Position numbers and translations under genes: made by a program. Below, one piece after another: positions 1 through 5,463 of a stretch of DNA of 32,056 bases (position 1 is its first letter; every line of letters begins with the position of its first letter). The DNA is from Syncephalis fuscata S228. Taxonomy: Eukaryota; Fungi; Zoopagomycota. The stretch lies in assembly GCA_025786725.1 (NCBI GenBank), contig JAHLTZ010000082.1:1-32056 (forward strand), read 5' to 3'. The notes under the pieces were generated by a model, which saw only the letters and a program-made list of their open reading frames with translations, had not been told where the DNA came from and did not search any database.

Positions 1-630
1 AAGCTCAAAATACACGCCTGGATTCCGATGGCCCATGCCCGTCCGGCGAAACACTAACCTTTACTTATCTTGAAAACGGCCATGTTACTAAGGATAAATT
101 ACCAGACCGGCCAAATCCCAAGACATACACAATCCATTGGTCGTCAGCAGCAAACACCGATAGTATTAAGATGCGTTCTGATCTGTCGGAAAGCAACCAG
201 CTCGGTCCCGTGCATCAGTTTGACGATGGCCAATGCTCCGAGGATGGCTCGATGGGCCGTGCTGCACGCCCATGCCGCGGTAGCTTTACCATTCCAAGTA
301 ATGCAGCACCCGGCCGGCACCAGTTCGTTTGGTGGTGGAAGTTTGATAAGGCAGCGCCCGAGGAATATACCGCCTGTTTTGACGTTATGGTTTCGGGTAG
401 CGATGCACCTTCAAGTCCAGAACCTAGTCCAGAACCTAGTCCAGAGCCACGGCCCAATCCGCCATCATCACCATCTCCACCACCATCAAGCGACAACAAA
501 TGCGCTGGCCAGACCTACGACAAGAATGCATACGTGTGCGACAACGATCAGCTATGCACTATCGACAACCGTGCTTGCGGTAAAGCCTGCTATTCACCAT
601 CCCGTCAAGTGTGTTGACGGCAGTGCGTAG
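1..630 (+). CDS. LPMO-like (His-brace) protein paralog 1 with Pro/Ser linker and C-terminal CBM52-like module; 5'-truncated by window, apparent indels near 26, 44 and 612
   Basis: From 45 the frame reads GETLTFTYLENGHVTKDKLPDRPNPKTYTIHWSS...FDDGQCSEDG...RHQFVWWWKFDKAAPEEYTACFDV, nearly identical to the paralog at 1296-2275. It continues into an (SPEP)3 linker and CAGQTYDKNAYVCDNDQLCTIDNRACGKACYSPSRQVC (CBM52-type Cys pattern). Upstream homology SSKYTPGF-P-MAHAR-P-G needs two +1 C corrections. The stop is at 617, or at 630 (RQVCVDGSA*) if a GT is missing. Confidence 0.8.
414..449 (+). repeat. 3 x 12-bp coding tandem repeat encoding SPEP linker
   Basis: agtccagaacct agtccagaacct agtccagagcca. 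Confidence 0.9.
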
Positions 631-1295
631 TCTCTATTGTATGTGCCATCAGTCAGTTTAATTAATTATTTGCAGGACAAAATAAACTATAAATATAATA
701 ACTTATTCTGTTATAAATGGTTTTACTAGATTTGTATTTTTTTACTTACTATGCAGCTATTGGTATGTTTATAATAACCATCATTACAATTATTTGAATG
801 TGTAAAATGTTAAGTTTGATTATGTAGCAATAATAGACATATATTATATAGCTAATAGCTGCAATATGGTTGTAAATACGTTTCATTTTATCATATTGGC
901 ATATCCATTAACATGAGTTGCTTTGATAATAAATAGGCTGTTATCTAGAAATATTGTAGGCAGACAACTTTCTATGCTCTATTATTAGTTATGTTTATAT
1001 ATATAACTTTTTCAATATCGATATCAATATCGGTTTCTAGTTTCATTTCATTCTTATTACTTTTATATATTATCTAGTTTATTATATTTGATTGTAATAG
1101 TTAATAGTGATATTCTTAGCGTTAATCAATATTATTAACATCAAAACTACGATTAGGATAGCATCATAATAATGTGTTGTTTGGTCATCCAAATTGCAAT
1201 CTCTAAAATCAAAGTTGCAACAGTGCTATGTGAAATAAATAGTTAAAATAGTAAATATTTATTTATAATCCATACGATTCCAATTGTTTGCTTCA

Positions 1296-2275
1296 TTAGC
1301 AGCTATGTATTAGCTGAACAAGCTGATTGTTTGGGCAACATTTATATTGCTTTGGAGAATAACAAGCAGTGCCGCATGCTTTGGTACTCAACGGACACAG
1401 CTGGTTATTGTCGCAAACATAAAGTGAAGGATTATATGGTTGGCCTTTGCAGGAAAGAATACACTTGTATTGCTGGCAATTGGACGGCTAGTTGTAGCTG
1501 GCGAAGAGCTTTTGGCTGACGAGCTATTGCTTAAATCTTTACTATCCAGAGCAACATTACTGCCAACGGTGCTTTCGGGTATTGCCGCGTTCACCGTTGC
1601 CTCAGGATTGCTACCATCAAGGATCATAACATCAAAACAGGCGGTATACTCTTCTGGGCCCGCCTTATCAAATTTCCACCACCAAACAAACTGGTGCCGG
1701 CCAGGTGTAGCACTGCTTGGAATGGTGAAACTGCCGCGACATGGACGTTTAACACGGCCTGGTTGAAGACCGTCCTCGGAACATTGGCCATCATCAAATG
1801 GTAGAGCTGGACCGAGTTGGTTTTGTGCTGTCATATCCGACATCATTTTAATTGTGTCTTGATTTGCTGCTGACGACCAATGGATCGTGTATGTCTTGGG
1901 ATTTGGCTGGTCTGGCAATTTATCCTTTGTGACGTGGCCATTTTCAAGATAAGTCAAGGTTAGTGTTTGGCCGGGACGAGCATTGGCCATTGGAAATGCA
2001 GGCGCGTATTGTGTGCTTGAATCCTGTCGACCAGGGAAACAAGCAGGGACGTTTTGTCGATTGAGTATCCGGTAAGTCATATCGACGTCAATATGATTGG
2101 GGCTCCAGCCACGTTGGTAGCCATTGCACTGATTTGTGCTAATCGAATAATTGGTGCATTCAAGCCAGGAATGCGCGCCAACACTAGGCCATTGCTGGGC
2201 GAGTACAATGAAAGCGGCTAGCGCTATTGTACCAGCATTACGTTTAACACTAATATTATTTAAATAGATATTCAT
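1296..2275 (-). CDS. Secreted LPMO-like (His-brace) protein paralog 2 with Ser/Thr linker and frameshifted C-terminal CBM52-like module
   Basis: ATG at 2275; signal peptide ...ALAAFIVLAQQWPSVGA|HSWLEC with the His1 codon at 2173-2171. Mature H80 lies in YLENGH, and E174-E175-Y176-x-x-C179 follows. After the linker a different frame (1451-1296) reads CKGQPYNPSLYVCDNNQLCPLSTKACGTACYSPKQYKCCPNNQLVQLIHSC*, homologous to the paralog 1 module. One base appears to be missing around 1452-1488. Confidence 0.82.
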
Positions 2276-2743
2276 AATGACCGTATTTAGTATGAATTCA
2301 GAATAATACGCAAACAATGGTTGCTTGCATTCAAAATAGGTGCGCTACACTTAGTTGACGAATACAGGAGGTGATAGATTATAAAATGGCAGCAGGGTAT
2401 TCAAAAAGGCCAAGACTTTAGTTATAACCATGACATTGCAATTGAAAAAGGATGTTGCCATGTGAACTTGGAGTGGAAAAGCAAGTAAAACAATTTTCAT
2501 GTGTATTTTCAATAATAGTCGTTGTTCTAGACTCCATTCGGCAGCCAGAAATTGCTAAATATGAATTAAAAGACAAGTTCCCATAGCTTGTTATCCGCAG
2601 TAATATAATGTAAAAATTCTTAGTTGTGAAATAATTTGCATTTAAAGTCCGCACGTAAAACTGCCACACAATAAACAAATTAACTGCTTAATAATTTATT
2701 CCATTTACGGATAAGCACAATGCCTGACCGGCTAAAAACAGTC

Positions 2744-3565
2744 TTAATTAACGTGTTGCTGAGGAGCAATCGTGCCAGCCGCGACTTGATCACGAACTTG
2801 TTCGGGATAGTTGTACTGCGATGCATAGTCGAACCAATCGTTGCCATAGCCAGGATTGAATAGTGGCTTGTTACCAAGCCAGCGCGAAGCCTCGTTGGGT
2901 GGTAGCGCATCTCCTCGTTTCTCACCTGGAGAAAGTACATTGACATCGAAACAGGATGTATACTCTTCTTTGCCGTTAGTTTTGGCAAATTTCCACCACC
3001 ATACGACTTGGTGTCGTCCAGGTGCGGCGTCTTTTGGGATTGTTAGCCGACCCCAACATGGTCGTTTCACGCGACCAGCCGTTGTTCCTAAATCGGCACA
3101 ACCACCATCATCAAACTTAATCTCACGGCCAAGTTGGTTATTCTGGCTAAGATCAGCACGTGTCTTTATCGTATCGATATTTGTCGCAGTCGACCAATGT
3201 ACCGAGTAAGTGCCTGGATTCGGTGTGGGCAGATCAGCTACAGCATGGTTGCGCTCCATGTAGGTAAAAGTGATAGTTTGACCAGGAAATGCTCGTGCCA
3301 TAGGAAAACTGGGATTATCCGCTGCACGTTGCTGGTGGTTAGGAAAGCATGCTGGTGCTTTAGGATCACTTTGGCCTTTAAGACGCCAGGTCATTAGCGC
3401 ATCGCGATGCTGCGCGTCCCAGCCGCGCTGCCAGCCATGGCATTGTCCATTACGAAAATCAGTGCACTCAAGCCAGGAATGCGCCTTGGCTGGGTGGACG
3501 TCCGTAAGTAAAACACCAGCTGCGACTATAATAGCCGCTATAAGGGATGTAAGTTGCAAAATCAT
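2744..3565 (-). CDS. Secreted LPMO-like (His-brace) protein paralog 3, no CBM, aromatic-rich C-terminal extension
   Basis: Intact 273-aa ORF; signal peptide MILQLTSLIAAIIVAAGVLLTDVHPAKA|HSWLEC; H79 in YMERNH; FDDGGC; HQVVWWWKF; EEYTSCFDV. The six catalytic-domain Cys are shared with paralog 2. Confidence 0.85.
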   Translation of the reverse strand: MILQLTSLIAAIIVAAGVLLTDVHPAKAHSWLECTDFRNGQCHGWQRGWDAQHRDALMTWRLKGQSDPKAPACFPNHQQRAADNPSFPMARAFPGQTITFTYMERNHAVADLPTPNPGTYSVHWSTATNIDTIKTRADLSQNNQLGREIKFDDGGCADLGTTAGRVKRPCWGRLTIPKDAAPGRHQVVWWWKFAKTNGKEEYTSCFDVNVLSPGEKRGDALPPNEASRWLGNKPLFNPGYGNDWFDYASQYNYPEQVRDQVAAGTIAPQQHVN

Positions 3566-5463
3566 GGTTAGTTGCTAGTTAGTTTAGGATAATGAAATGA
3601 AAATGAATTTAAGATAATTTGCAGGCTTTATCTGTGAAAACGGGTGCTTTAAATATTTAATCCGCTTTTTTCTAAGGCGCTCTTCTCATACCTATTACCG
3701 CTTGTGCGATATAGTTTTTTCAAATGCACAACGGTTAAATCGTAGTCACTTTTACTTTGCTATCATTTACGTTAAAAGGTATAGTTTACTAAAACAGTGT
3801 TCGAGGTATGGTGTGTTTTAAAACATCTTTTTCCGTTTTTTTTGAAACAGCAGTCTTTTAATCATAATACTGCCTTGAATGGTAGTGATACAAACTGCTT
3901 TACTAGTTAAATAGTAAATGTTGCTTTGTTCTACACTATAAATACTTTAAACATGGCTTATTTGCAATTAAGCTTATTAATATTCGGTTCAGTGTATATA
4001 CGTGATAAAAATGATTTTACAAGTATGCAATTAGTTACGTTTTTATCTGCAGTAGCAGGCAACAAATAAACTTTGAATAATCACTGATTTATACCCATTT
4101 GTTTCAACTTGATACTGGTATTTAAAACTTAACGTCATAACTAAGTCCTATCCATTTTTGCATTGGTGTAACTTTTATCAAAACTGGTAATTTCGATGTG
4201 TGTATCTATCATGAATAGCAAGGATTACAGTAAAATAGACAAATCAAATACTATAAGACCCCATGACGTTTAACAGCTAGGTGCTTGATAGCATTGATAG
4301 AGGTGGTGGGCTGTAAGCTGATACATCATATGTTGGCTTATAGTCGATGGAACGCAATAATGTGTTTATACATATTGTTCATAAAAACATAACATACGAC
4401 AAACGTGTAACATTTTGTACCAACAAAGCCAAAGAACGCAATGTAAGAAGGTAAATATTGTTAAACTTTAGTTTACAGTCAAGTATCAAGTATAAGTAGG
4501 AAAGTGGCTATGTATATTAAATATATGAGCTGATTTATAGGCACAAAGTGATATATTTTATTTTTCATTAGTATTGTTTGCTCTGCATTAACATATTAGA
4601 ATATTGCAATTAGCTGCATTAGATACAGCTACAGTTGTGCTGCCCATTTTAACAATAATACCAGTAGTCTATTAGTCAGTTATTTTATTTATGTATATTA
4701 GTATTATTAAATTAATAAATGTGTGCTGTGTGTATTTTATTTTATATTCAATTTTATGTGCATTGATATTGATTGTTTGCTTGGTGGTCAAATGACTGAC
4801 ATTTAATAACATTTAATTTATTGAACATGATGGCGGGTGGTGAATGGCATCAAAGTTTAAAATACTTATCATGATAGATTATTATCCAGTATGCATATAT
4901 CCACCATTTACTTATATCATTTAACAATATAGTAGACACATTCTTTTCGCTGTAAAGCCAACAGTTTTTATTCATTTCGGTGATACACATATATATACTA
5001 TAATTTTAATACAATTATTCATTTTTCTCTAATTTGCTTTGTTTTACATCAATGTATATTATAATATCTATACTTATTTATTAAGGCTGTTTGTTCTTCT
5101 TTAGTTGCGTTTTCAACAAAGTTTGACTTGTTCGTTTTTTATTCTATTTTCTATGCATATATGAGCCGTTGCTATTTAGCCCATTTTGATTTTTTGTTTT
5201 AGAATCATTTTGCTATCACGTGAATAGGCATTAGCAGCCATCAGGTCTTACTTTAATTGGTAGAGGTATGGAATTCTACCGCCTTGGCCGAACAATAAAC
5301 ACAACGCTTGCGTTTTATTCTTTTTAATCCCTTCCTTGTTCGTTCGTTATTAGATATCCAGACTCCGGTTGGAACAAGGAGTTGGTTCATTTCCAAAGCT
5401 CATTTTCAAACTTTCTTTTCAAACATTGCATTATTAAGAATTACAAGCATTCATTATATTAGC

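Follow-up and report, generated by a model that had tools for sequence, protein, structure and literature searches.

DUF7492 proteins of the mycoparasite Syncephalis fuscata: a candidate LPMO-like family with a predicted histidine brace, fused to CBM52-type modules

Each of the earlier lytic polysaccharide monooxygenase (LPMO) families has revealed a new substrate or role, including starch for AA13, xylan for AA14, insect chitin for AA15 and, for AA17, pectin in plant infection. The LPMO-like fold is also found in the secreted fungal X325/Bim1-like proteins. X325 corresponds to the Pfam family DUF6595 (PMC10952591), and its members have an extra Asp ligand, no carbohydrate-binding module (CBM) and no polysaccharide activity (PMC13353379). 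Syncephalis (Zoopagomycota) is an obligate mycoparasite (PMC10079182), and a contig of Syncephalis fuscata S228 (GenBank JAHLTZ010000082.1, 32,056 nucleotides, referred to in full as the window) carries at positions 1-3565 three paralogous genes, here called p1, p2 and p3, which belong to the Pfam family DUF7492. In our view, p1-p3 probably code for secreted members of a separate LPMO superfamily branch that is still uncharacterised, with copper-dependent oxidation of polysaccharides as the proposed activity. From its sequences and predicted fold, DUF7492 emerges as a well-supported candidate for a new LPMO-like family, in which the histidine-brace signature is intact and which is fused in this genome to CBM52-type modules.

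All three paralogs score above the gathering cut-off of PF24320 (DUF7492, 27 bits), with 39.2 bits for p1 (E 6e-10), 59.5 bits for p2 (E 4e-16) and 45.6 bits for p3 (E 7e-12), and the family name that an earlier note on this DNA had suggested is therefore correct. A scan of the 29-Mb genome with PF24320 returned only these three genes, once on the window contig and once on a second contig of the same genome (C46). A profile search against 1.84 billion representatives revealed 394 relatives at E-values up to 1e-3, and 130 of 135 profile-search matches also match Pfam DUF7492. Members were found in Zoopagomycota, Kickxellomycotina, Mortierellomycota, Taphrinomycotina and oomycetes, and the presence of the family in Mortierellomycota, Taphrinomycotina and an oomycete indicates that it is not specific to mycoparasites. 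The LPMO likeness of DUF7492 is already hinted at in databases, since UniRef labels some members as "Chitin-binding type-4 domain-containing protein" and the ESM Atlas labels related Mucoromycota clusters as "Lytic polysaccharide monooxygenase", and the family itself is already catalogued in Pfam. NCBIfam contained nothing relevant, and the name DUF7492 was not found in any paper of the searched literature.

The gene p3 (2744-3565, minus strand) is complete and encodes a protein of 273 amino acids (99% identical to the S. fuscata hypothetical protein P0001) in which the signal peptide (3482-3565) precedes a catalytic-type DUF7492 domain (about 2906-3481) and an aromatic-rich tail of 53 residues (2747-2905). 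p2 (1296-2275, minus strand) encodes a signal peptide and the DUF7492 domain, joined through a Ser-rich linker to a Carb_bind module (1326-1451), and is represented by the 326-residue NCBI model P0006. The N-terminus of p1 (3-617, plus strand) lies beyond the contig start, and the partial gene comprises the C-terminal two thirds of DUF7492, a Pro/Ser linker and a Carb_bind module (498-620). Cleavage of the signal peptide was judged by the residues at positions -3 and -1 (A-x-A, V-x-A or S-x-A) in front of HSW. As the earlier note had claimed for p2 and p3, their signal peptides end directly before HSWLEC (V-G-A in p2, A-K-A in p3), and the first His of the p3 motif (codon 3479-3481, minus strand; 2171-2173 in p2, same strand) is predicted to become the N-terminus of the mature protein and to serve as its first copper ligand. 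The N-terminal exon of p1, present in C46, likewise encodes a signal peptide ending in S-M-A, followed by HSWLEC. Among homologs spanning the full domain, 64 of 64 have H-S/T-W immediately after a hydrophobic leader.

The second His claimed in that note at mature position 79/80 was located as His79 in p3 (YMERNH; codon 3245-3247, minus strand) and His80 in p2 (YLENGH), and the same YLENGH motif is present in p1. The three proteins also share FDDGxC and, in line with the previously noted late W-x-W strand followed by E-E-Y-T-x-C-F-D-V, the motif VWWWKF...EEYT(A/S)CFDV. The occurrence of these shared motifs in all three paralogs is far beyond chance. In an alignment of 65 sequences with a mean column identity of 25%, the only invariant columns are His1, His79 (65 of 65 homologs) and Trp163 of the W-x-W motif. 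The column of Tyr174 (codon 2960-2962 in p3, minus strand), the predicted axial residue, contains Tyr in 63 sequences and Phe in two, and two positions before it the column of Glu172 is acidic or Gln in 60 of 65 (53 Glu, five Gln and two Asp). LPMOs of families AA9-AA17 show the same alternation of Tyr and Phe at the axial position and of Glu and Gln in the second sphere. As read from the alignment, the residue pattern of DUF7492 matches that of LPMOs, and p1-p3 are very probably histidine-brace copper proteins.

A check of the fold with AlphaFold and Foldseek, as proposed in the earlier note, supported the expected β-sandwich. The AlphaFold2 model of the p3 domain, built from the family alignment, has a mean predicted local distance difference test (pLDDT) of 92.1 and a predicted template modelling score of 0.90, and the top 50 Foldseek matches of this model are all LPMOs. 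In an exhaustive structural comparison of the same model against 48,161 chains using VIA-align, ranks 1-22 were all LPMO or LPMO-like, with Z-scores of 7.6-11.8, and every structural alignment begins at model residue 1, opposite the His1 of the enzyme chain. Below rank 22, the matches are unrelated chains with Z 7.5 or lower, except for AA14 (Z 7.1). The best match was AA15 (5msz; Z 11.8, 148 aligned residues, root-mean-square deviation (rmsd) 3.2), followed by AA13 (4opb; Z 11.2), AA10 (4oy7; Z 10.9), AA11 (4mai; Z 10.2, 139 aligned residues, rmsd 3.0, 18% identity), AA9 (7ntl; Z 9.7), X325 (6ibh; Z 9.5) and AA16 (7ze9; Z 7.6). The predicted fold of the p3 domain is thus an LPMO-type immunoglobulin/fibronectin type III-like β-sandwich. 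The three closest structures (5msz, 4opb and 4oy7) align over model residues 1-185, but share 12-15% identity with the model and no significant sequence similarity, and their Z-scores are far below what we would expect within one family. Since no single AA family stands out structurally, DUF7492 looks like a separate branch.

This fold class is common, and several unrelated β-sandwich proteins reach Z 6-7.5 against the model, as might be expected if p1-p3 were metal-free, non-enzymatic secreted proteins that use an immunoglobulin-like LPMO scaffold for wall binding or adhesion. However, such a role would leave unexplained the strict conservation of His1, of the second His and of the Tyr/Phe and Glu/Gln pattern across 65 distant homologs, and we regard it as extremely improbable.

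At the sequence level, the closest link of DUF7492 is to AA11. A search with the DUF7492 profile against the PDB returned only AA11 chains (4mah, 9exj and 7p3u); these matches are weak (E-values 9e-7 to 2e-5) and confined to a stretch of ~55 residues at the C-terminus. Like the window proteins, the AA11 enzymes AoAA11 (4mah/4mai), AfAA11B (9exj) and AfAA11A (7p3u) are secreted fungal β-sandwich proteins that start at His1, and the block T-I-P..PG.Y..W-x-W...E-x-Y-x-x-C aligns with an E-value of about 1e-6. In this alignment, the W-x-W and E-x-Y-x-x-C motifs are in register, the latter corresponding to Glu138, Tyr140 and Cys143 of AoAA11, and Tyr174 of p3 falls on the AA11 Tyr. These matches, together with the highest structural-alignment identities (18-21%, for AA11 chains) and the UniRef and ESM Atlas names, could mean that the proteins belong, though strongly diverged, to a CAZy family already described, with AA11 the likeliest, and that no new family is involved. 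However, only about 55 of 190 DUF7492 residues align by sequence, the Z-score of AA11 (10.2) is no better than those of AA15, AA13 and AA10, and Pfam curators keep DUF7492 separate. The HSW(L/I)DC N-terminus, the NGH motif of the second His and the FDDGxC loop are unmatched in any hit chain, and DUF7492 has extra Cys pairs. In addition, the second His of AA11 is at position 60 as opposed to 79/80, and the known AA11 enzymes act on chitin, whereas p1 and p2 carry CBM52-type modules. Neither the PDB profile search nor structural alignment revealed full-length, family-level similarity to CAZy AA11, and we find membership in this or another established family very unlikely. The window proteins have no Pfam match to AA9 (PF03443), AA10/LPMO_10 (PF03067) or BIM1-like at E-values up to 1, and only 2-3 of 65-135 DUF7492 relatives show weak AA9/AA10 Pfam matches. 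The suggestion in the earlier note that the motifs fall outside the AA9-AA17 families stands with respect to these Pfam models, but not for E-x-Y-x-x-C, which aligns with AA11.

The same genome contains about 25 LPMO_10-type loci, partly in tandem arrays, on contigs C304 (27.9-33.6 kb), C309 (10.6-44.4 kb), C139, C86 and others (including loci L008-L017). They encode short secreted proteins that start with HGY... and contain W-x-W...EEYEQC.DV, and the arrays represent a large LPMO expansion in this mycoparasite. These proteins resemble the DUF7492 paralogs in having a signal peptide followed by His and a late W-x-W...EEY-x-x-C-x-DV, but differ in their much shorter catalytic domain (~130 amino acids), their match to Pfam LPMO_10, another Cys-rich C-terminal module and the large size of their tandem arrays. 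An hhalign comparison of DUF7492 with these proteins gave a weak match (82% probability) with the second His one column off.

The C-terminal modules of p1 and p2 match Pfam PF10645 (Carb_bind), which we take to be equivalent to CAZy CBM52, the β-1,3-glucan-binding module of Schizosaccharomyces pombe Eng1. Against a cut-off of 25 bits, the p1 module reaches 26 bits in its window copy and 40.5 bits in the C46 copy, and the p2 module (P0006) 36.1 bits. In the 29-Mb genome, Carb_bind was found only on the p1 and p2 genes. In S. pombe, the endo-1,3-β-glucanase Eng1 carries three CBM52 modules (PMC9609564). There the module is attached to a GH81 hydrolase, whereas in S. fuscata it is attached to an LPMO-like domain. 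CBM96 fusions are present in 4 of 135 other DUF7492 members. In place of the CBM52-type module, p3 has its aromatic tail, whose pattern LPPNEA..W..NPGYGN.W.DYA..Y is kept in five Zoopagales orthologs. This tail has no Pfam match and is modelled poorly by AlphaFold2 (pLDDT about 40-60), and could represent either a disordered extension or a short aromatic one that binds carbohydrate.

In the mechanism that we propose, cleavage of the signal peptide would expose His1, whose amino group and side chain, together with His79/80, would coordinate a single copper ion as a histidine brace, with Tyr174 as the axial and Glu172 as the second-sphere residue. The reduced copper with H2O2 or O2 would then attack a cell-wall polysaccharide by oxidation at a glycosidic carbon. 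The CBM52-type module of p1 and p2, on its flexible linker, would bring the domain to the polymer; p3 has its conserved aromatic tail instead. β-1,3-Glucan is our best guess for this polymer, with chitin or chitosan as alternatives. That p1-p3 are true polysaccharide-oxidising enzymes is slightly favoured, whereas β-1,3-glucan as the substrate is a tentative proposal that we consider doubtful. A literature search on LPMO plus curdlan or laminarin did not return a β-1,3-glucan-active LPMO, which is a weak negative. The most far-reaching form of the proposal, in which DUF7492 is a new AA family of copper LPMOs, its CBM52-bearing members cut β-1,3-glucan by oxidation and Syncephalis secretes the enzymes to breach the walls of its fungal hosts or to feed on them, is unlikely to hold in all its parts.

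The integrity of the three genes was assessed using the second copy of the locus. Window positions 1-4003 are 98.4% identical to positions 240055-244106 of C46, a 621-kb contig, and differ from them mainly by single bases deleted from the window (~40, dense at 600-1160). The window contig is probably an error-prone duplicate or low-quality haplotig end of C46, which accounts for several apparent frameshifts. In p2, the window lacks a base after 1461, so that the open frame already ends at 1388 and the Carb_bind module is out of frame; the true coding sequence extends to 1296, and translation of 1296-1460 yields the module. The gene is in frame in C46 and in a transcript contig. In p1, a second frame break at position 44 and a garbled 3' end (603-635) are found in the window copy only.

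The p3-then-p2-type gene order is kept in S. plumigaleata and S. pseudoplumigaleata. Over the DUF7492 domain, with the two reading-frame pieces of p1 joined for codon counting only, p1 and p2 differ by a synonymous divergence (dS) of 0.97, with a ratio of nonsynonymous to synonymous divergence (dN/dS) of 0.14. These values indicate purifying selection on both copies, and p1 and p2 are an old pair of inverted duplicates. The locus was found in only one public sequencing run (X1), which we read as RNA because its contigs are restricted to genic parts, a GT..AG skip occurs in one of them and they include an attached Illumina adapter. Contigs of this run cover p1 (45-661) and p3 (2684-3578), with the spacers and window positions 1-44 uncovered. 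At 603-635 and after 1461, the contigs include the bases absent from the window, which confines those frameshifts to the window copy. The contig over p2 (1285-2560, plus strand) skips 309 nucleotides (1959-2267) with canonical GT..AG intron borders on the plus strand, which identifies it as a spliced antisense transcript. No contig in this run covers the sense-only part of p2, and the antisense transcript may reflect antisense regulation of one paralog.

Several observations weigh against the proposed role of p1-p3 as LPMOs acting on a host wall. The walls of Mucorales hosts contain much chitin and chitosan and little β-1,3-glucan. p1 has a frame break at about position 25 (20-30; L007:4075-4079), where TTCC-G replaces the expected TTCCCG, and this break is common to the window and C46. 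In view of the purifying selection on p1 and its transcription, we favour either an error of assembly or a pseudogenisation that happened very recently. That run X1 represents RNA is itself a guess, and p2 is covered in it by a single transcript contig, which is spliced and antisense. The structural similarity of the p3 model to LPMOs is middling (template modelling scores of 0.4-0.55, Z 10-12). DUF7492 is also common in lineages outside Zoopagales, which we take to be largely non-mycoparasitic, and about 17 of 65 members have a hydrophobic C-terminus after a Ser/Thr-rich linker, similar to the glycosylphosphatidylinositol (GPI) anchor signals of X325/Bim1. With only three genes at this locus, members outside Zoopagales and GPI-like tails in about a quarter of the family, the locally expanded cell-wall-attack system that the earlier note raised as a possibility is speculative.

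Part of this evidence would fit histidine-brace proteins of the X325/Bim1-like type, which bind copper without cleaving polysaccharides and serve in copper acquisition, buffering or remodelling of the fungus's own wall, with the CBM only as a wall anchor. The non-catalytic LaX325 (6ibh) is nearly as close to the p3 model as the true LPMOs, within about 1-2 Z units, and some DUF7492 members look GPI-anchored, as X325 proteins do. A histidine brace, moreover, is no predictor of polysaccharide oxidation, for which there is a reviewed precedent (PMC13353379). However, X325 is a separate Pfam family and the window proteins have no Pfam match to BIM1-like or DUF6595. They end in either a CBM or a polar tail, with no GPI-like signal in any of the three, and the CBMs of p1 and p2 have no counterpart in X325 (PMC13353379). 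They also keep the second-sphere Glu/Gln residue typical of catalytic LPMOs, and the sequence link of the family runs to the catalytic AA11. We therefore consider a non-cleaving, copper-binding role rather unlikely, and favour the reading of p1-p3 as members of a separate LPMO branch that would oxidise polysaccharides; among its parts, an attack on the host wall, as opposed to remodelling of the parasite's own wall, is a speculative proposal.

Other proteins of the family show additional architectures. The oomycete gene model P0082 (Pythium brassicae, 1341 amino acids) joins DUF7492 to a Tos1 cell-wall domain, and the giant protein P0060 (6462 amino acids) contains 12 stretches that match the DUF7492 profile. 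P0016, P0030, P0038 and P0067 have a common Cys-rich C-terminal motif, G-C...C-R-F-C-K/R, with no Pfam match, which may be an unrecognised binding module. In the 3.6-32 kb part of the window, Pfam searches of the neighbouring open reading frames found no redox partner or carbohydrate-active enzyme. Three described groups were considered as possible identities of DUF7492 and rejected. AA18, cited with Santos et al. 2025, was rejected because we take it to be the jelly-roll enzyme CelOCE. The latter is described in a review (PMC13353379). The Podosphaera protein PxLPMO1 (191 amino acids, His1/His52), which was modelled on LaX325 and AA11 templates, was taken as belonging to another family because its length and the position of its second His differ from those of DUF7492 (PMC8035642). 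TrsA/Egh16, presented as a "new LPMO family", contains an Egh16 domain, and its reported orthologs are confined to nematode-trapping fungi (PMC12377627).

DUF7492 shows every sequence and predicted fold hallmark of an LPMO family and occurs widely among early-diverging fungi, Taphrinomycotina and oomycetes. Because it is fused to a CBM52-type module, fungal β-1,3-glucan can be put forward as a concrete substrate hypothesis that is open to testing, and the occurrence in Syncephalis ties the family to parasitism of fungi on other fungi. Should the proteins prove non-catalytic, DUF7492 would be, next to X325, the second large group of copper proteins that resemble LPMOs.

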